DNA of 64,000 nucleotides, taken from the NCBI RefSeq assembly GCF_022045235.1, contig NW_027266270.1:11842001-11906000 (forward strand). The letters run 5' to 3'. The notes beneath the pieces are model-generated. The model did no database searches, was not told the DNA's origin, and was given only the letters and a program-made list of their open reading frames with translations. Shown here one piece after another: positions 39,671 to 54,200 of the stretch (its first letter is position 1; each line of letters opens with the position of its first letter). Made by a program: the position numbers and the translations under genes. The stretch is from Haliotis cracherodii (Eukaryota).

Positions 39671-42600
39671 ATTTGTATTATCATACAGACAGTAGTTTCT
39701 AGGTCCTGTTGCATATCTGTGAGATGGTCACATTGATCAGCACAATAACAACATACTATAGTACAGTGGTTTGGGGAAAGGTAGTTATATACCAAACATG
39801 GGCTACCTTCGCTTACAAATTGCTGCTGCACTGCTGCCTCTGATTGACCAATCAGAACGCTGCTGCATGCTACGACTTCGTCTCAAAATGGTTGACGAGT
39901 CATGGTCTATACTACAAAGCAAAAAAGCTTAACAAAAACAGTCTAAAAATAAGGTTGGATAAACTACTCAACCCATCTAAAATTGTCGCAGCTGGTTTTG
40001 CTTGAGAGGTTAAATTGCACCACAAAAGTTCACACGCTTTATGTAGAAATACAAACGACGGACAAACGATTGTATTGCACAATAATCCATTGTTTTGACA
40101 AAAATCAAGGTTCATGACTAGTTGCTGCAGTTGTCTGCGGCTTAATTTAAACTTGATTGGCTAATTCATGTTACATTAAATTCCCTATACATCATAAATG
40201 ATAAATTAGAACTTAGCACACACAGCTTGACAACCAGTACGGTATGAAATTCGTAATGCACCAGTTGAATTGTTTACACACATCACGTAAGGGAGACATT
40301 GCATATATTGCCAAAAAACATCAAATTACATGTCCATATTCAAACTCAAGAAATTAATATCTTAACACCAATTTTGAGCATTTCCAATAAAAAAAAATGT
40401 TGCTCAGTTTTCATAAAAACAATTACGATTAAATGAAAAATATTTTTTTAATTATTTTTTCAGATTGCGGAATGTTTGAATATGTACAAGTTCCGATGTT
40501 TTTTCTTCGTAATGACTCCCTTCTAAATAATCAACACAAAATTGAGAGTCATGTACACTTAAGTAACACTGCTTCCATATGAGTTATACAAACCTATACC
40601 GACATTGCAGAGAAAACCGTCCACTATTTAAATGCTGCCTTATGGTCTACGGTATTAACACTAAGGGGCATGATATGAACGCTGAATGGTAAATTTGGAA
40701 AAAAAGGCCTCATGACATAGTTTCAAATCATATGTGACCTTTGCACAGAAGAGATACAAAAGCTTCAGAATTCTTGATTCAAGAAGTAGCACTTATAGCG
40801 TATAAGTTATGAAATAAATATAACTTTGTTCATCATACGTTTAAAGAAATCTCAGATCTTCACTTAATGAGATTCTAAAGCATCTTCATCTGAACCAACT
40901 TCATAAACCAATTTGATAAAATGTTCTTTTAACAATAAATCAAACATTCATTAACATTAAACATGTTCGTGCCCTATCCACAAAAATATAACAATTTCAC
41001 ATTAAAATATATGAACCCAGAGTAATACCCTATATCATTTAGGACAGGATGATATGGTAAATGGATTTGTCATGGACAAACAATCAGCAAACTAAAGCTG
41101 CTACACATAGCAAATAAATACCACAGGAAGGCGATATGTTTTCTGGCGATGCCAAAGTTTGTCAAGATGGCGCAGTGGACACCCTCACAGATGGAACTCT
41201 GCGGCGAATACTCAAGCACTGTCGAGTCGCACCGCGGCACTGTGCAAGGACCCAGCCATTACGAGTTCCACATGTACGTACACCAGCATCTGGTATGTTC
41301 CCACACTGCCTGGTGTGATGTTCCACCGATATAATGTGTCCTTTTGTCCCCTTTCCATAGTTGCCAGAGCAGGCCCAGTCTCACACAAAACAAACACCGC
41401 TACAGCTAACACAACTCAGACGCAGGCAGGGAGACCCTCTCAACGGGGCATGCCTCCTCGTTGCCATGACAACACAATGGACGCATCCTCGTAAGGACGT
41501 ATCTTATATTTTTCTTGTTGAAAAAAACGTTTTATTACAAAAAATGTTTTTTGTTCATTCATGATAGTATTGGCATCTGAGTGAATTCAGATGGCATCAG
41601 ATCGTCTAACTATCAGATTTCCAGCTATACAAAGGGTCAAACATACATGTTCTCATGAACTACAGAGAGACAATTACATGGAGATTCATACCAATGTACA
41701 CATCTCAATGGTTTCTACTGGTGCAGTTATTAGCTACAGCAGCGGGCTAGAACAGCACGAGACAGTTTATATATTATATATTTATTTATAAATGCATCAA
41801 AACAACCGTACAGAAAACATACACTTAATAGAAACTGAGACGCTTTCTATGTACATATTGGACCCTGAATAGTGGGGTTGAATCGATGAATATGTATATT
41901 TATTGCATGGACCTTGGAAACACCTATCACGTAGTTTCCAGCTGACAAACGATCATGTGACATGGAATAAATAAATAAATAACTTAGTATACAACAAAGA
42001 AATACACCTCGGCCCTCTGGGGATTCAAATTTTCACCGAAACTGGTGCAGATTTTTTTTACATAACTTCAAATACACTGTACATGAAATTAACAATGTTC
42101 TATACTGTTGAGATGATTGCTTCGAGTCTCAGTAAATATATAGGTGGAATGGAAAAAGTCATGGAATGGATTTTATAAGATACATGAGCTTAATTGTTTT
42201 GAACCGATATCATTTTCATTTGCATGAAACTGTCACAAGATTCTTCCTATTGCTTAGAGAGAAAAGAAATGATCTAGATTTAGCACCATGGTGTTATTTT
42301 GTCCCTATTTCGCTTAACACTCGAAGTAACCATCGCTGGACTGAGATTTTTTCGTAATACGCAAACCTTGGTCATGGATTTCATAAAATGTCTATAAAAC
42401 ATAAATGATATATAAGATTCCACTCGCACATTATCATCTTGATCAAAATGACCAAAAAATACTTTGATGATCATAACAATACAATGAGCACAATCTGACA
42501 AATACTGAAAATCAGAACACAATTTCAACAAAATCAACCACAAAAAAAATAACTAAAAAATTAATTTATCATGATTATCTACACTATAAATGTGAAAAAT

Positions 42601-43357
42601 ATTGCACATTATCTGAACCTCCTTGCGATTCCGCAAAAAGTCTTTGTTTCCACAGAGCTCGTTAGACACTAACGAACTATACAATCAGACAGGTAATAGG
42701 GAGGCGCAATGAAATGACTAGTTCAATGGAATGATGAAAATGGGTATAAAACCTCTCTTGGCTCCATACAAATATGAATTGAGATATGATATGTCTCCGA
42801 ATGACCTATACGTCGCAATATGTATCAACTCCATGGGCATAATAACTGATTTGTCATCCAAAACAACTTGCAAACGATAATAGTAAAGCGATTGGTAAAT
42901 AGATTAGCAATAGCCAAAACAAAATATGAAGCACACAGGATGGATCTTCAGTGGTAATAATGTGTATGGTCTTGGACCATGTCTTTTTTTTAAATCAGAG
43001 GTTAAAACCAGATACCTTTCGGTATATGATAAATAAATAAATATAAAAATTTGGCTAGGACTTAGAGTCTGCAATACCTGATTTGTTAAGAGAAACAATA
43101 ATTTAAATTAAGGTCAATATTAAATTAAATAATTTACATAATCAACAGCTGATGGAATGTTGAAAACGAAGCAAAAATACAACTTAAATAGCAATAACAA
43201 ACTAAACATGTCGGTTGGTCTTTGGATTGCATCGAGCATGGCTATAGGACAACGACAATGACACTTCTGAGGTCATGATGACGAGAAAAGTAGTCCCGGC
43301 TCTGATGTATGAATCTATGAGAGCGAGCAAGGAGATCCACAATTGTGACATACATGG
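39650..43357 (-). other. Probable long 3' UTR of ONECUT
   Basis: Lies downstream of the TAA stop, is free of SINEs and satellites, and is T-rich on the minus strand. Best poly(A) signal is AATAAA at 39665-39670 (minus). Other AATAAA hexamers at 41531, 41781 and 41899 could give shorter forms. Confidence 0.5.
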
Positions 43358-43647
43358 TTAACTCTTCGTACACGAACTCGCACTTTCACGGTTGTTGTTC
43401 CCGTTATCGTCTTGCCACTTATCCAAAGACCTGCGTCGGGCATTCATGAAGAAGTTGGCTACTGTGCTCACTTCAAGTCCAAGTTGCTGTGCAATAGTAG
43501 CTTGCATCTCCTTCGACGGACGTTTTGTTTCCTTAAATATTGCATGAAGCGTACGGCGTTGAATATCTGTGAACACCAGTCGAGGTTTTTTTGGAGGTCG
43601 ATTTTCCTCTGGGGGCTTTTCTTGCTCTGCCTCTTTCCTCTTGCATG
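43358..43647 (-). CDS. ONECUT: ONECUT/HNF6 homeobox transcription factor, terminal coding exon (linker end + homeodomain + C-terminus)
   Basis: Minus-strand acceptor ttttcttccag|CA TGC AAG at 43648-43650. Phase-1 translation: (A)CKRKEAEQEKPPEENRPPKKPRLVFTDIQRRTLHAIFKETKRPSKEMQATIAQQLGLEVSTVANFFMNARRRSLDKWQDDNGNNNRESASSCTKS*. FFMN (F48/M50) is diagnostic of ONECUT homeodomains. ACKRKE, KKPRLVFTD, RRSLDKW and the C-terminal CTK match vertebrate ONECUT1 as recalled. The ORF-track start at 43576 is not a real start. Confidence 0.97.
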
Positions 43648-45227
43648 CTGGAAGAAAATTTCCAAAATCATAATTAGAGAAATCCTCACTAATATGAAAA
43701 TAAGAAATGACATTTGGGAAGAAATTAGATGCATCAATAAATGAACAGATACATATTTTTCAAGTCTAGAATAAAGATCAAGGGAGATAACCAAGGTAGG
43801 GGAAAATTCATATAATTATTAGCTCAGAATGGCTTTGGATTTAAGAACAAAATTTATTCGTCATTTTTCAAATGAAATATACCCTCACTATGGTACCTGC
43901 CTAGACTATATTTAATCCTGAGTGATTATTTCTCTATTAATTAGTTTATCAGAAGACATCTATTTTATAAGAGGCCACTTAATTACACAGTACCTCGAGC
44001 ATGGAAAGGCTTCGTCTTTGCAAGTCCACCTTTCCATGACTGAAAATATAACAGGCTGAGAATAGCCTTAACAGTTCCAATAATCAGATATTGGGTATCA
44101 TATCTTACTAAAAATGTCACATTCAATATTTTCTATAGTCATGTTTCTTTCTCCCTTTGGTGCTACAAGGCAAGCTGCTTCATGGAATACTGTTACTTTG
44201 CCAGAGTTACCTCCCTTTTGTGACTGCACTTTGTTAGTTAGCTCCACCGTTTCTAGGATACAGCTACGATTTATAGCCACAGAAATTACAGAGGGAAGTC
44301 TATCACCAATGAAATACACTTTATGAATAATGACGACCAGGTGTTAATTCTCAGTAAGGAAGATAAAACATGTCATATCAACTTTATTTCCATAACAAAA
44401 CATGACAGCATTAGCAGGAAAACTGATATTTTGTTTATAAACAGTTAGGATTGAATTTTTCAAAATGTTAAAAAATATTTCTGTGATCAGCATATTCAAT
44501 CCTTTGGGAAGAATGGAGTGACATTTTCATTTTCTTATGAGAAATTGCATGAATCTTTCTAAGAAATGCATAAAAGTTGGCGGGATCAGCGTCATGGTAA
44601 TGAGACTGTTATTTCCTAGCGTTGTGGTAACTGTAACCAGCTGTTACATAGTGCTAAACCCTCACATCCTTCTATCCTGGTGCTGCTGTCACATGGTCAA
44701 ATCATGACACTTACATTTCCATGGAAACAGGAACCCATACTTAGTTACAAATTACTCTTTAAACATAGCCTCTGTCATAGTATCAATGTCATGATGAAAC
44801 TGCTTAAAATCTATGTTTTTGTAAATCAATTACACATTTGTTAAGAAACTCAATATATTTTAGATGCTACTACTATGATAATGTCAATCTAACTTATCTG
44901 GTTACCTTATTTTTATGTCTAGTCAGGTATGCTAGAAATGACTTATTATGAGACATTGAGCTTATTGACCAAAACAATTCTAAGATGCATGCAAAATAGG
45001 AGGCAAAAGCGTGAAAACGCGGCACTTCAGCAAAAAATCAAGAACAGAAATCAAAAACAAAGTGCAGCTTCAATTAATCATCTAAAAACTTCACAGAATT
45101 CACAAACTCCAAGTTAGCTTTGCACCAGTGAGAATAAATACCATCATGCACAAAATTTGAGATGTTTTCAGGGTGGGTAGCAGGTAACAGCAGTTGCAGT
45201 GGCTGTTCCGGGGACCTCCCTACTCAC

Positions 45228-45305
45228 CTTGCGAGAAGCGTGGCTGCTGGCCAGGACCTTGGCCGGGGTAAGTTTGGGTGTGATAGGGCTGTGAGGAGGC
45301 TGTAC
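45228..45305 (-). CDS. ONECUT: Candidate 78-bp cassette exon of ONECUT encoding a 26-aa CUT-homeodomain linker insert (GTASSQPYHTQTYPGQGPGQQPRFSQ)
   Basis: Minus strand reads cctcctctatttcaacag|GTACAGCC...CTCGCAAG|gtgagta: a polypyrimidine-CAG acceptor and a consensus donor. Length is 78 = 26 codons, open in the phase 1-1 frame required by the downstream exon, and GC-rich relative to its flanks. Confidence 0.7.
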
Positions 45306-48300
45306 CTGTTGAAATAGAGGAGGACGTGTCTAAGAGCTCACTCCCAATGAGGTGGGTGGTTAAGGGAAGGACTTGCTCACCATTTCTTGGCTCATAATGT
45401 CCCTTCCATTTTCCCCCCCAGTGTTGGAATTAAACCTTCTTTTGCTATATTTCATTTCCAGTATTGGAATTCAAACTTTCAAACCATGTATTTAAATTTT
45501 GATATTACACATCCATGAAAATCAGGACGGTGATGTAATGATGAATCATGTCAGTTGGACTGATTTCAGTTCGGTGAAAAAGATCATAGGTATTACTACA
45601 GATGAAAACAGCCCTATACAACTGAGGAATGCGGTAACTGATTGCACTGAGACCAAGGAAAGATGAGCAGGCTATGTAATAAGCACACAAGCCAATAGGG
45701 GCACGATGCATGGCACCACATGAGGAACCCAAGGTGGATCACAATGTCAGTCTGGAATCAATTTTCTTAACTAAACACATTTTCCATTGCAGTTTTTTCC
45801 ACACTGTTACCTGTTTATCATAAATGGGATAGTCATCAACGCAAAATAGTGATCAGCAAATCATGAAATAAATGCATTAAATCAATATCGCAAAATATCT
45901 ATTGAACATAAAATGTGCGATAAATCAAAATTCAAAACTCTAACAATTGGAGCAGTCAAAATGATCTCTGTGCTGAAAACATAAGCATGTTTGCTAATTA
46001 CCCTGTATGTATCATGCATGTTGATGAAGATGAAGATACAGATGAAGATGAAGATGAAGGAAGGAGGAAGGAAGACGTGAGTCTTGTTAGATACAGCTTC
46101 ATAAATACACAACTAATCACCATCACAAGTATCATGCAACTGACCACAAAGTGACATCAACGAAATGAAAACGTCATGTACAACATCCGCTTTTGATCTG
46201 CCAATATTGATAAATGGGAACATTGCGATTTGGGCAAACCATGCTACATGAATCTTGTCAAAGTCGTAAAAGTATTACTCAATTTTCCTTGTTTTTCAGC
46301 AGGAAAATAAACACTGTCTATTGTTTGACCGGGCACTTAATAACATGTAGCCTTACCTAGCAACGTCAACTCTCATGGAATTTTCTCACCGTTGGCGGAC
46401 TTTAAACTCATCTTCGTACATTTATGACAGGGTTGCCCTCGTGGGTCAAAGCCTGCATTATTAATCAACTGCCTTATTTATAATGAAATAACTAGTATGT
46501 CACTTAAGCTTACAAAACACTGTCATTCCCTTATCTTCATGCATTGAAAAAATCTTAATAAATGGGAAATTATTACATCTTCGACCTTTTTTTTGTCCAT
46601 ATTTATCTGGTCTGGATCATGAATATACCATGGAAGTTCATTTAATCAGAAAAGTTGTATCTGCATGGCCAGTTGAATTTTTTAGTGCAATGTAAAGTGT
46701 TCATTTATCTAAGAGCAAGAATAAAAAATAAGACGAGATTGTATCAACAAGGATGGTCATGGCATTCTAAAAATGGGCAATACCCAGGATAACAAATCAC
46801 TTGTAGATAGCTTCCATTTAAACGTAAGTATGTGTGAGTCAATGTTTACAACTCTGTGTATATTTAGCCTAACAATTACATTTTGTCTGATCCTTGAAAA
46901 GAATTTCAAAGTACAATGCGTTATTCATCAACACTGTGTCAGTGACACTGTCCAATTGATGCAATATCATGGTGTGATCTCATTGCAAGAAGTGTCTTGA
47001 TAAACCAGGACTTAGCCATCTAACCCTACCACCCACAGCTCCGACTTAAACCAAACCATCAAAGTGTCTCAAATCTAAAATCAAAGCCATCTAGACAGAC
47101 TGGGAGACAAATAGACCACAAAGTTATCTGTCATGTTTCTCGTCCTGCTCCTAGGACGAGAGCTTCGGTCGCTAGGACATGTTCCAACAACGAAGGATGC
47201 CATGTCATCCTGGTAACGCCGGCATCTTCTGCCATGAATTCATAACCATAGAAAGTTTTGCTATGAAATTGAGAAAATGTGCCGTGTGGGCCTAACTAAT
47301 TAATGTTGGCAATGTGAGAGCAAATAGCCACACCTGTTTAGAAGGACATAAAATTGTCATGTTCCTGATCTTTGTGTCGAGGAGAGTGAGAAAACATCTG
47401 TAGCTGTGTGGGAAGTAGTATCTAGTTCCTTGTGAATGACATATACCACGGCCTTTCTCACACTGTTTACATTAAGTATCATTAAGATAAACACACTTAG
47501 ACCCCATTGTACAGATATCTATCGCCACATGTTTACCGTCTGGCCTAAAAAAACGTAATAACTGCTACAAACTCCTATTGAAATTGTTGCCCGAAAATAC
47601 TGGTTTGATAATAGCCTTGATGATATTTTTTCGATGAAACTTTCAAACAATCATTAGCTCTGAAGATAATACACACAGACTAATCTCCAATGCATCAGCA
47701 GAAGCTTGACAAATTCGCAGGAGTAATGTGATAAAATCTGGTGTTTTATTGATGGCAAACGCTGTGTTCCATTTACAACAAGGCATCACCAAACAGGCGA
47801 GGAGACAGCAATTGCAGGCCTAACTCAAACCGAAATAAATGGTCCACCCGTGTGCAAGGTTAAAAGAAAGCGATATATTGAAGTAAATAATTCACGCTTG
47901 GACAAAGAGACCAGATAGCAATGCACTACACAGTAATTGCATTGGGTCGTGGAGACAATAAAATAATATTCCTATTCAAACAGCCCTGTTAACGATATGC
48001 CTAGTCAGGTCTGTCTCTTGTAATTACATGAAAGAGGGGAAATCTTGGAAGGATGAACAAAATGGAGATGGGGGGAAAAAGTGGGCATTTTGTACGAGGT
48101 TAACGTAAGCTTGGCTATTAGCTGACGAGCTCCTGGCGAAATTGTACGGATCAAGTCCCGGTCACTCTGGTTAAATTTAACGTTGATTTTTTTCACTTCA
48201 TTTCCTCGAGACAAAAACAGGTTCTCTGGGCTCTTACAAGCAACGACAAGCTCTTTTAATGAAGCAAGTTCCTTCAGTGCGCACACACAGCTGTCAGTCC

Positions 48301-49460
48301 TGAATGGACCGTTGTCATGGTAACAATTTCTGAAAGAAGCTCAACGGTAGGCAACATGGCTGCTCCCAGGAAGGCGAAACAATACTGGCCTTGACGGAAC
48401 ATGCAAAAATTGCCTCTTAAATGATGACATTTCAACCAGTTATGACAGATTCCATGGAAAATAACCCACGTTATCATCATTGATGTAAAGTGCCTTTTTT
48501 CTAATGGAAAAGAATTTTAAAAATTGGTATAAAAGACGTTTTTCAATAGCACAACTGGGAATTTCAAATTCATTATGACATCCCTAAACAAAACTGGGAA
48601 GACGAAGAATGACTTAATCATCTTAACAAGTCGGAGCTACAAGCAAAACGTGTCTTCTGGCACCCTCCCTACCCACTATTTTTAAAACAATTCTCCATGG
48701 AAGCATCTTAAACAGAAATTGCCTTCTCAATATAGATTAACGGAACATTTTATGCCATTTCATTAAAAAGGCTAATGTTCAATACCAAGCTTTCACAAAA
48801 GTAATGTCAATCACAAAATGAAATAAATTTCAAAGCTCTCTCAATAGAAGCTTAATTGATGTCTAGTCAGATGCAGGCAAGAAACAATAGTGAGTATTTT
48901 TACGGGAAATTGAGGACGACATGTTATTGTGCAGCACATGTCTATCTGTCCAACCAAATAAACAAGAAGGCACTTGGCATTACAAGTCTCAACAGCTGAC
49001 TTATCATTCCAGTGATAATCTCCATATGGACAAGACATATTTGCATCTCTCACGCTGTTTCCATTTCATCAACAGACAATAACCTCATGCCTGCAAAAAC
49101 TGAATACATGCCTGACATTCATGAGCACTTTTAGACCACGCGACTGCTATTTCCCTACCAGAATATTGAAAAAAAACATTGAAAAGATTTATTGGAAGTT
49201 ATGAAAATAGCCTTGTAATCATATCAGCGTAATTATATACACAGCGACCCATCTGTTTCTGATGAAATAAATCAACACACTTACCATTATAAACCTGTCA
49301 CAGACGAAGGTAACAAATGGTTAGTATGCTCAATTTCATTATGCCTTCATGGGAGCTTTTATACATAACATATGCCCTATAGCGACACTTGATTCTGGCA
49401 CACTTCGTTTTTCTCAGTTTATTTTATAGTCGCAACATCAATCTTTGGTGCTCTTGTACA

Positions 49461-49793
49461 AGTGAGGTGTAAATTGGGTTTAAAGTTGCATCCAAGATTA
49501 TTGCACTTATATAGAGACATGCATGCACGTGTGTGTGTGGCTGCTTGTACTAGTCCGGGCTGTTGTCGATTCATAGTGCCAGCACACTGGGCTACCATGC
49601 TGCAGTTTAACATAAATACCCCACTCAGACGCAGGAAACTGACTCCGAGCCGACCAGTCCTTGTTTAAGCCCCTTAATGCCGAGCGCCAGACAGGGTAAC
49701 AACAAGTACCATCTTTTAACCCCTTTTGGTATGATGCGGATCAAACCCCGGACGTTCCGCTCTCTGAGTGAACACTAGACCACGGAGGTGGTC
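49461..49793 (-). mobile_element. SINE family C in the ONECUT intron
   Basis: Aligns to 18191-18528; perfect 12-bp TSD TGCTCTTGTACA (49449-49460, 49794-49805). Confidence 0.92.
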
Positions 49794-49856
49794 TGCTCTT
49801 GTACACACAACAAGCAGGCTATGTTATCGAAGTTACAATCACCATAGCCTTTAGAG

Positions 49857-50022
49857 TGAGTGAGTGTGTTTGGTTTTACGCCGCTTTTAGCACTATTCCA
49901 GCAATATAACGGCGGGGGACACCAGAAATGGGCTTCACACATTGTACCCATGTCGGGAGTCGAACCCAGGTCTTCTGCGTGACGAGCGAATGCTTTAACC
50001 ACTTGGCTACCCGACCACCCCT
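49857..50022 (-). mobile_element. SINE family A in the ONECUT intron
   Basis: Perfect 13-bp TSD ATAGCCTTTAGAG (49844-49856, 50023-50035). Confidence 0.93.
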
Positions 50023-53000
50023 ATAGCCTTTAGAGCACTTTGAACAACAGCACAATGGTCTCAAATTTTCAGAAGCGTGATACCAAGATGATTCTTGGAA
50101 TGGGATGTGGTATTGGTCATATCCAAAGACAGTTTTCATCCATATAGTATGTTACTTGGTGGTTTAAGGACCTCATGCTAATTTCCAGATTCTCGGATTA
50201 CATTATTGGCAAAGTCAATCATATTCTCTCCATTGAAGGGGAAATTCCCATACAACTCAATAGCCTCCCTGCCATGTGCGGTTTGTCAATAATCAGTGAT
50301 TACAATCAGCCAAGTTAATCCTGGCCAAGAGATTCATGTCAATTGACAACCACAGCTCCAACAATGATGGGTTTTACATGACATCTAAACATATCACTTT
50401 GGTAAGTCGAATTTCGGAAGAAATGTGCGAATCATTTGTTGGCAGTTATCACAGTTGAGGTAAAAAAGTTATTAGATGAAGGTGAGGATTGGTCTGTGAC
50501 TATTTGTTTATCTCTCATCGTTTAGCACTCGAGATCAATCTGGAAGTAGGATTAAGCTTAATTACGTTCAAGTTTTATGCGTTCGACATTCTCATCATTA
50601 ATGATTAATACTTATTGTATTTTATCAGCGAGTTTAGAGGAGGGGCTCGGAACAATTAAACACTGGATCAATTTGCTCAGCTTCGAGCTGAGTGATCGGG
50701 TTTCTCTGCGCAAACTCTGACCATACCAATGCAATTTACCGAGGGGTGGACTGCGTGACATGTGAGAGGTCTGTGTTGTGCTGGCAGCGCGTTGGGCAGG
50801 GGCTGAGGTCCAGGACGGGCTAAGCGATCTCGCCTCAAGCAGAGACTGCTAGAACAGCTGAGTATCTCCCAGGCTTAAGACAATAGCAAACAAGATCTCC
50901 CTCCCATCCTCTGTTTGTGCCTTTTCTTTCGGCCGATGGATTTATGGATTTTTCTCTCAACTCGGGGAGATCGGGGGAGATACTTAAGAACTTGTGCGAT
51001 CAATAACTGATTTCATTCATCTAGAAGGAAAAACTTGCCGATTTTTGTTTGCTCTTTGCTGACTCTGTGCGACCTTGCAGGCAGTAAAAACAGAGGCTTT
51101 CATCCCGGAGCATGCGCGTGAATAGCATGACGAGGCACCTCCCGCACCAGGTGACGGGTTCCCCCAGCATTACGTCAACCAGAATTGTTCCTTGGCTGCG
51201 GCCTGCTGCGATAACGGTCCGCTCGTCAAATATGTGCTCTATAAATTCTCCTCAACAATTCTCAAGAGCAAAATCTTCAGCAAAGGAAAGAATTGTTGAA
51301 ACACTTCAATGGAGAAAATGAAGTCTAAATCTGTCTCTTTTAATTTTGTTCCGTTACCTTCTTGTCAACACAGTTTCTATTGTGTTGCTGTGTTAAGTCA
51401 CTCACATCAAGCATCAGAGACATAAATAAACTTCAACCAGGGCCAATGGTTGGCTCCATTGCCAACTATGCTGCATGCAAGTCTGGACAATGGATGGAAA
51501 TTAGAAATGAGCCCCGCACACTAAGCCATCCTCTTTGTCTGCTTACTGTGTCAATGTTTAAAGAGAACTGGTTTCTATTTTGTATCTACGTTGGCGATGA
51601 TATTCACTATTTTCTCCAGCTTAGGTTAGCATGAATAAAACACTACAAACACCTTGCAAACGCACAAGCCATGAAGCAGTGAATAGATGCTTGAACAAAA
51701 AATATCCCTGGTTAACAAATTAATACTACAATGATCACCGCCAGCCACAATGGTTCGTCTTCAACTAACCAACAGCTCTCCAAGATAAATTACAACGCAG
51801 GCTCTCATCAATTTGCAACACCAGACACCATATCGGTCTGATGCCTATTTATAGCTTCATTAAATTCAAAACATTCTTCCAATAAAGAACCCAACAATAT
51901 TAATAAGCCTGTTTATATATCCAAGGCCTTTCAAAAACTAACACTTAAAAGCATAGGGAAACATGGCTGATGGAATCAATATCCAGTCTTAGTTTACAAT
52001 AAATCATGAGACTTGTACACGGTGCAGTATACAACCAGCAAGTCACATGGAATTGTAAGAGATGCTGTATAAGAAGATTCTGCCCGGACATCATATACTC
52101 AAAGGAGCAGATATAGTAATGCATCGTGGGTGTGGCCGATATGACTACTACTATTAGAGCTTTAATAATGGCATGTACAAGCCATATGCCCAACTCGTAA
52201 TTAAATCATTTTGCTACGTCCCAGCACGGCAGTGGCTTGGTTTTTATAACAGCCAATGTTCATGCTAATTTACTTTGGTAGAATAATTTTTCGAGAATTT
52301 GTATTAAATCGGCTTTATATTCCAGGGTTTATATTCTCAACATTTCCTGACAGGAGTTATAATATTAGATGTTCGTTGAAATACATCTGCCATGGAACAT
52401 AGGCATGTATGTGATACAGGAGCTAGAAAAGAGGCCAGTTATTCTGTGTGCAGATAAATTCTAAACAACAAAAATAAATGTAACTTAATAATTCCCTTAT
52501 AAAAATGTATTTTGCAGAATTCATTAAATCATTTCCTTAACTGCCATCCCCTTGGGCTTATTGGAAAATCAATGCACTGAAATGCCCGAAACAAGGAAAA
52601 GTCAAACTAAGAATGTCACACCCATGCACATATTCCTCAAAAAGGCAACAAGTGGTCTTAGTAAAGGCCCCTTTATCAATCTTGATTTCATTTTAACAAG
52701 TGTTGCATTTATTGGAATATTGACAACATAATTTGATACGTGCCTGGCCGACTGCTCAAGGGAACGTCCGGCCTCCAATCTTCAAAATGATTCTTTTTCA
52801 CATCAATCACTGGGAATGGTTCCTGCCATTGCACTTTGGACAGACGAAATAACTGTATTTACGCGCTTTCAGACAATTGTTACAAATGTGATTATAAATA
52901 GACCAACTCATAATTTGGCTGTGTGTTTACATTCAAATGTTATCAACATATTTTATAAAAGTACTGAAGCACTAGCTTTCCTATAAATTAATCAAACTCT

Positions 53001-53479
53001 TTTTCTTTACACAACATCGTACCATTTTACAACACAATTTTTCAATTAAACAACAACACACTTCTTGCCTCACACATCAGAACAACCATACAGACAGACA
53101 AAAGAAATGCCTCAAAATTTTCTAATCAACCCCATTTGAGGTCTGACCTCAGGAGGTCGCTGTGCAACAACATCGAAGTAGACCTTTGCAACACATATTC
53201 CCCTGATGAGTTAGGTTTAAAGTGGTTACATTTACTACAGCTCTTTCAAAATTTAATGATGTGTCACATCAGCTACCATCAAGTAAATTTGCCAGGGGAA
53301 TAGCATCAGTTTTCTCGACATTCTTTCATGTCTAAGCTTCAAAACAAAAAACATTTCACTATATTCGACAAGGGGCTGCGATGTATGTCAACGAAACCAC
53401 TGTGTCAAGCAATAGTTGAATAACCAATGAAGACAGTCGTATTGCTGCAATAAATGGATGAAATCAGCATACACCCTGC

Positions 53480-54200
53480 CCCAGCAAATCTCTTGGCATA
53501 AAACATTTTTCTTGAGTACTGCTAGGCACCGACCGAATCATCAGTGGAGTGGAAAGGCGAAGTGCATGAGCTTGCATTGTTTCTAACACTTGAATGGTTT
53601 CAGTTGGCACACCGAGCCAGGCAGGGAAGCTTAATCTCGTCATTACTGCAAGAGGCAAGTTTCAACCATCCTTCTCTTCAAACCGGTTCCTGGCTGGACT
53701 GCATTTTCGTACGCCTCATAAAGCTGTGCATTTATCTTAGACCAGCCTTCCTTTACCAGGGTGTGATTTAAAGGCTAGGAGACATATTAGCTGGAAGACA
53801 ACCTTCGATGGGGAAACTGGCTAGAGAATGGTGAACGGCTAGCACAAACGAAGGCTTATTCAGGTCGTTGCTTACAAAGCTTCTTTCTTGCTATGGAAAC
53901 GGTGAAACAATACTTAGCTATGGAGCCTGGGTTATTATAAACAACATGGCAGGATCTTTCTCAACCAGGTCATGAACAGGAAAAGGGTTGAGCACCAGAT
54001 GAGACATAGTAATTGCTCCTAGTTGAAAATGCTCAACTTTGGATATGGTATGTCCTGTATTTTCCCAGGCAGCACCGAGCCTTTCAGAATTTATTTGCAA
54101 AGAGAAAGCTAATTCAACGAAGTCTTCAGAACGCATAACCACTAATGCATGTTCCCGTCCAATTTTCCTGCAAAATGAAAGGCCTATGCTGGCTTAAGGA
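53480..54200 (-). pseudogene. Possible highly decayed LINE reverse-transcriptase remnant
   Basis: Minus-strand peptides in the expected order: ...CISGYA (YADD-like), LQINSERLGAAWENTGHTISK (LQ.DL..L..W....L.IN..K-like), SFPAWLGVPTETIQVLETMQAHALRL (Y..PVW.......LE.IQ..ALR-like). Broken by stops and frameshifts. Confidence 0.35.

Follow-up and report, generated by a model that had tools for sequence, protein, structure and literature searches.

A conserved 26-residue cassette in the CUT-homeodomain linker of abalone ONECUT, with skipping predicted by gene models

Throughout the animal kingdom, neurons, sensory cells and cell types of the endoderm are specified by ONECUT factors, and the way in which a single ONECUT protein selects its sites is still under study. 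Our literature search for ONECUT linker isoforms returned none from molluscs or other invertebrates and only the cases of rat and skate. In the rat, HNF6 beta (491 aa) exceeds HNF6 alpha (465 aa) by 26 aa of the CUT-homeodomain linker, encoded by an exon of their own that is located between the exons of the CUT domain and the homeodomain (PMC11800625); an earlier note on the DNA studied here had rightly described such a linker insert from a separate exon. The little skate has an Onecut1 spacer isoform, LSOC1X2, with a spacer of 48 aa that current annotation shows in batoids only; read data revealed that the use of this spacer depends on the stage, and the one reporter tested is activated by either Onecut1 isoform (bioRxiv 10.1101/2025.07.30.667746).

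The ONECUT gene of the abalone Haliotis cracherodii holds a comparable exon, hereafter exon A. Like the rat beta exon, it is a small separate exon of the CUT-homeodomain intron that adds 26 aa, without a frame shift, at RLA|ACKRKE, and like the skate exon it is a predicted-disordered spacer between the CUT domain and the homeodomain that is, going by gene models, alternatively included. It departs from the rat case in that all four abalone transcriptome runs mapped gave the inclusion form on assembly, the abalone intron holds at least four cassette exons, and the length of the exon is not fixed among gastropods; moreover, differences in DNA binding between isoforms are known for the rat only. 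The skate spacer, for its part, is 48 aa long against 26 aa in abalone, and has measured stage use and reporter activity. Closely related, too, are the RefSeq models of H. cracherodii (X1-X4), with counterparts in H. rufescens and H. asinina, which represent the same protein including the 26 residues, from the same locus or species. We found no publication on these Haliotis isoform models. The sequence of exon A is thus already in RefSeq, and it is its conservation across gastropods and the multi-cassette organisation of the intron that appear undescribed, so that the value of the present analysis lies in the comparative picture and not in a new annotation.

The window, i.e. the whole 64,000-nt stretch of genomic DNA that was analysed, contains the 3′ part of the gene on its minus strand. 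The coding part of the homeodomain exon (ACKRKE...TKS plus the stop codon) occupies 43358..43647, begins at 43647 (cag|CATGCAAGAGG) and matches the Pfam homeodomain PF00046 with E = 1.6e-12. It includes, in ...STVANFFMNARRRSLDKW, the atypical FFMNARRR in place of WFxNRR, with Phe48 and Met50, residues that we take to be defining for the ONECUT class. The CUT domain lies upstream, outside the window: a whole-genome scan with PF02376 gave a match of 121.9 bits at G000:C7:11917165-11917392 (minus strand, window-equivalent about 75.2 kb), and the exon that carries it ends in ...ATG TCA GCT CTT CGG TTA GCA G|gtaata (L001:1491; window-equivalent 75155; G000:C7:11917155). This end agrees with the phase 1 that had been assumed for the CUT exon, and the intron between the two exons is about 31.5 kb long, also in phase 1. 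The gene therefore has one CUT domain upstream of a homeodomain, which is the architecture of the ONECUT class, and the translation of its exon 1 is 100% identical to the Haliotis cracherodii protein named 'one cut domain family member 2-like'. The same scan yielded a single ONECUT-type CUT match in the genome; with one ONECUT gene detected in abalone, questions about isoforms are free of confounding by paralogues. Three other CUT matches lie within about 11 kb of each other on another chromosome (G000:C3:48019255-48030609), a cluster consistent with a CUX-type gene.

Exon A extends over 45305..45228 on the minus strand (78 nt, phase 1-1) and encodes GTASSQPYHTQTYPGQGPGQQPRFSQ. On the gene strand the locus reads cctcctctatttcaacag|GTACAGCC...TTCTCGCAAG|gtgagta, the first exon base being 45305 and the last 45228. 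The acceptor cctcctctatttcaacag (45306..45323) has a pyrimidine fraction of 0.76 and ends in CAG, and the donor gtgagta (45221..45227), which follows AAG in TCGCAAG|gtgagta, matches MAG|GTRAGT at 9/9 positions. Read in phase 1, the exon gives GTASSQPYHTQTYPGQGPGQQPRFSQ and then the A-CKRKE of the homeodomain exon, and with a GC content of 0.62 it stands out from its surroundings (about 0.37). The GC-rich 78-bp segment, its acceptor and donor and the open phase 1-1 frame that had been described from the letters are thus all seen in the window, and the distance of 1.6 kb to the homeodomain exon corresponds to an intervening intron of 1580 nt. The exon and its flanks occur as a single copy in the genome, which rules out a repeat or transposon origin. 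A structured-RNA reading of the region was likewise ruled out, with no Rfam family at gathering score on either strand in 42000-54000.

The DNA-binding region of the abalone protein aligns with that of rat HNF6alpha (PDB 2d5v) with E = 3.5e-87, across the RLAACKRKE junction, and human ONECUT2 structures likewise align end to end with the abalone CUT-homeodomain region. Genomic read-through ORFs from mammals run from intron sequence into A|CKRKE; these ORFs suggest that the acceptor position is conserved between abalone and mammals, and the vertebrate ONECUT intron appears to lie at the same RLA|ACKRKE junction. Because the DNA-binding region aligns across this junction and the acceptor position seems conserved, abalone exon A is therefore, in its architecture, a cassette of the HNF6-beta type. 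Both its 26-aa length and its insertion at the RLA|ACKRKE linker junction, as had been proposed, are seen in the reading frame of the exon and again in the RefSeq isoform X2.

Four sampled 31-mers of exon A were found in 18 sequencing runs, from 5 studies and under 5 organism labels. We mapped the assembled contigs of four of these 18 runs (X2, X7, X12 and X13, one per organism and study) to 42600-46000; the four were chosen for containing exon A, and contigs lose minor variants. The runs were labelled RNA as a guess, and it is the spliced joints that show their mRNA content. The joint 43647<->45228 is explicit in contigs of runs X7 (5.2 kb), X13 (5.0 kb) and X12, and in run X2 the same junction is given by reciprocal loose ends that overlap by 13 nt; the intron ends at this joint are CT..AC on the plus strand, that is GT..AG on the gene strand. 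Upstream of 45305, contigs of X7, X13 and X2 carry on with the last bases of the CUT exon (from L001:1494); their loose end is at 45308 rather than 45305 because the CUT exon and the acceptor both end in CAG. Exon A is accordingly a separate in-frame cassette exon inside the CUT-homeodomain intron, with the joint 45228->43647 explicit and CUT->45305 read from loose ends, and the transcript order CUT, exon A, homeodomain is directly observed. Both inclusion junctions that the earlier note had put forward for checking were in this way recovered from transcriptome contigs, CUT/45305 in three of the four runs and 45228/43647 in all four. The intron at 43740-45220 is uncovered in all four, except for one low-depth fragment of run X7, from which it follows that these runs contain spliced RNA. 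A break in a contig of run X2 was considered as a sign of a second isoform and dropped, since it does not fall where the branch of a skipping form would. Protein searches gave no transcript-derived abalone protein with exon 1 and no abalone transcript fragment with the homeodomain exon, the latter search returning almost only genomic read-through ORFs.

The earlier note had called the exon unannotated, which does not hold: it is already in RefSeq models of H. cracherodii (X1, X2 and X3), H. rufescens, H. asinina and H. rubra. The four H. cracherodii isoforms (XP_071100003-6) are automated RefSeq gene models. Isoform X1 (493 aa) has exon A together with a further 30-aa cassette, exon B; X2 (463 aa, XP_071100004.1) has exon A only and reads ...MSALRLA-GTASSQPYHTQTYPGQGPGQQPRFSQ-ACKRKE...; X3 (450 aa) combines exons A and B with a frame-shifting 46-nt exon and is without the homeodomain; and in X4 (437 aa) exon A is skipped. 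The 463/437-aa pair is also present in RefSeq for H. rufescens and for H. asinina, and Patella vulgata has an inclusion/skip pair of 457/437 aa. Skipping of exon A is at present a prediction of gene models, namely the 437-aa RefSeq models of three abalone species and Patella. The H. rubra model X1 includes exon A, like models of H. rufescens and H. asinina. Two H. rubra models, P0124 and P0157, have a frame change inside the homeodomain exon (...PPKKTTTGVHRYSTPYASCNI), which suggests an assembly indel and not biology.

Given a long intron, it could be asked whether exon A is a chance pseudo-exon that is never used, and the in-window part of the intron (43648-64000), some 20 kb, does contain 670 segments of 30-200 nt that are open, keep the frame and are bounded by AG..GT. 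Exon A is however the sole one of these that combines a 9/9 MAG|GTRAGT donor with a YAG acceptor and a tract whose pyrimidine fraction is 0.7 or more, and this splice-site control together with the spliced contigs of the four runs refutes the pseudo-exon; with RefSeq models of four abalone species that carry the exon and homologues across gastropods, we regard its chances as negligible. Exon A is a real, conserved linker cassette of abalone ONECUT. It is another matter whether it is ever left out. The exon could be constitutive in abalone and the 437-aa skip isoforms could be products of modelling, stemming for example from protein alignments of species whose annotated ONECUT has no insert. 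In the four runs, all contigs that extend as far as the homeodomain exon's 5′ end go on into exon A, the splice sites of the exon are very strong, and inclusion forms prevail among the transcript-derived mollusc entries (P0019, P0039, P0058 and P0142). On the other hand, skip models were made independently for H. cracherodii, H. rufescens, H. asinina and Patella vulgata, and contigs can show presence but not absence. The skip junction CUT|43647 was not present in contigs of the four runs, which were themselves picked for holding exon A, and given this choice of runs and the dropping of minor variants in contigs it does not follow that skipping is absent. We therefore consider constitutive inclusion rather unlikely, and prefer the reading of exon A as a cassette that can be skipped.

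Exon A is one of at least four cassette exons in the CUT-homeodomain intron, A and B being in frame and two others, C and D, frame-breaking. Exon B (52833..52744, minus strand) has 90 nt, is in frame, encodes VQWQEPFPVIDVKKNHFEDWRPDVPLSSRP and is used in RefSeq X1 and X3; it is known from these models, the read mapping having spanned 42600-46000. Its donor is GC and not GT (CAG|gcacgt). Haliotis shares with Nucella, Pomacea and Gigantopelta an upstream cassette that starts with VQW, VQC or VQL. Some 116 nt downstream of exon B, at 52628, there is a UGCAUG. Exon C (44039..43994, minus strand, 46 nt) is the frame-shifting exon of RefSeq X3, where its inclusion gives a truncated CUT-only protein that has lost the homeodomain; contigs of the four runs mapped gave no coverage of it. 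Exon D lies outside the window, on the minus strand (L005:1497-1569; G000:C7:11908008-11908080; window-equivalent 66008-66080). It has 73 nt, with the acceptor ttttacag| and the donor CAG|gtacat, and presents a TGA in the reading frame of the CUT exon. A contig of run X12 enters exon A from exon D (it maps to G000:C7:11908012-41) and not from the CUT exon, and the same D+A arrangement is found in the H. rubra X2 model (P0157), so exon D is probably a poison exon or part of an unproductive isoform. Pomacea isoforms X2 and X4 (P0133, P0134) have a frame-breaking exon of their own after exon A, non-homologous to exon C, which is a hint that the interval from exon A to the homeodomain exon is repeatedly used for unproductive splicing.

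In order to compare the linker among species, the segments between ALRLA and CKRKE were extracted from all retrieved proteins and those of gastropods were aligned with MAFFT. The inserts are GTASSQPYHTQTYPGQGPGQQPRFSQ in Haliotis (26 aa), GTAFQPFHMSPPNGNQSSPQ in Patella (20 aa), GSAFKPSSPTKSGYGQQGYMPE in Pomacea (22 aa), GSAFKPSSPNKPSYVQPQQSFMAE in Littorina (24 aa) and GSAFKPSQSPTKPGFVGQQSYIPE in Biomphalaria (24 aa). The gastropod exon A, directly before ACKRKE, starts with G[ST]A[FS]xP and ends with GQQx[YF]xx[EQ] over a length of 20-26 aa, and Ala344 and Pro348 are invariant in the 17 gastropod sequences; a similar segment is contained in the longer linker of Gigantopelta. The abalone copy is the most divergent among gastropods, with about one third identity to the Pomacea exon by eye. 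Identity within Haliotis is uninformative, because over the whole 463 aa a single residue separates the proteins of H. asinina and H. cracherodii. Exon A thus dates back at least to the gastropod ancestor. Bivalves, cephalopods, a chiton, nemerteans and Lingula likewise have annotated in-frame inserts at this junction, in which no sequence shared with the gastropod exon A was recognisable. Since the length of the gastropod exon is unfixed, its match to the 26 aa of rat HNF6-beta is most likely a coincidence. The equal length had been offered as ancestral, as convergent under a constraint on linker length, or as coincidental; only the last of these is favoured, and the other two are unlikely with homologues of 20, 22 and 24 aa.

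At the protein level, inclusion of exon A adds, between ...MSALRLA and ACKRKE..., 26 residues among which Gln, Pro, Gly, Ser, Thr and Tyr are frequent (6 Q, 4 P, 4 G, 3 S, 3 T and 2 Y), and the length of the tether is more than doubled. According to the gene models, skipping would give a protein of 437 aa instead of 463, and exon A may be combined with exon B (30 aa) or with the frame-breaking exons C and D. An AlphaFold2 run on a 17-sequence alignment yielded confident folds for the CUT domain (approximately 265-337) and for the homeodomain (approximately 389-448), and gave residues 338-388, among which exon A corresponds to 342-367, a pLDDT of about 30 and no secondary structure. The predicted disorder and the residue composition support the view of the exon A linker as a flexible, disordered tether. 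If rat HNF6 alpha/beta and skate Onecut1 can serve as an analogy, a longer tether may loosen the coupling of spacing and orientation between the CUT and homeodomain half-sites, and looser coupling may in turn alter site preference or binding kinetics; we infer an effect of exon A on DNA binding from the same analogy. Taking the evidence as a whole, we consider it quite probable that exon A is a genuine conserved linker exon, skippable according to gene models, whose longer tether would shift the preference for DNA sites or the kinetics of binding.

Exon A could instead act by its sequence and not by its length, through short linear motifs or Ser/Thr/Tyr phosphorylation sites, with the N-terminal G[ST]A[FS]xP and the C-terminal GQQx[YF] recruiting partners or regulating activity, a reading that is compatible with the spacer model. 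Both end motifs are kept across gastropod orders while the length ranges from 20 to 26 aa, and the exon, being Q/P-rich like many activation regions, is also predicted to be disordered; against this, the abalone copy has diverged the most, the motifs are not those of the inserts at the same junction in bivalves, cephalopods, nemerteans and brachiopods, and there is no known partner, so that we hold a sequence-based role to be possible but doubtful. As for origin, the sameness of intron, phase and length could be taken to mean that exon A and the rat HNF6-beta exon are orthologues, descended from a cassette of the bilaterian ancestor whose length of 26 aa has been conserved, and cassettes at this junction are indeed annotated in molluscs, nemerteans and a brachiopod and described in rat and skate. 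However, the insert varies between 20 and 26 aa within gastropods and reaches 48 aa in skate, and the inserts of different phyla have no recognisable common sequence, which makes such orthology very unlikely. It is also a long shot that the CUT-homeodomain intron of ONECUT is an ancient bilaterian splicing hub, with the rat, skate and lophotrochozoan spacers all derived from one ancestral alternatively spliced cassette; if this were true, the in-frame exons A and B and the poison exons C and D would, in single-copy genes, stand in for the three vertebrate paralogues. The persistence of the cassette in gastropods and its recurrence in other lophotrochozoans, rat and skate suggest that the linker tether is a recurrent control point in evolution, which would concern the length or the content of the tether between the CUT domain and the homeodomain.

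With regard to the regulation of the cassette, two UGCAUG motifs of the Rbfox type (45150-45145 and 44993-44988, minus strand) follow the exon A donor downstream, at distances of 78 and 235 nt. Two within 300 nt compare with an intron background of 0.64 per kb (about 0.2 expected), which is weak statistical evidence. UGCAUG downstream of an exon is the classical arrangement for inclusion promoted by Rbfox, and the motifs could accordingly be imagined to mediate a Rbfox-type, probably neuronal, promotion of exon A inclusion; we take this putative regulation as a lead and not as a finding.

The mapped contigs also bear on the transcript beyond the linker. The 3′ UTR of ONECUT is long: contigs of runs X7 and X13 cover 42600-43357 continuously and extend below 42600. 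Over this interval run X13, which has a different species label, shows 38 letter differences and 14 gap positions, and exon A is identical in all runs. Two positions in the homeodomain exon differ between the window and the transcriptomes, 43613 with C in 4/4 runs and G in the window, and 43610 with G in 3/4 runs and T in the window; both changes are synonymous and fall in the third positions of linker Pro codons (CCC CCA on the gene strand).
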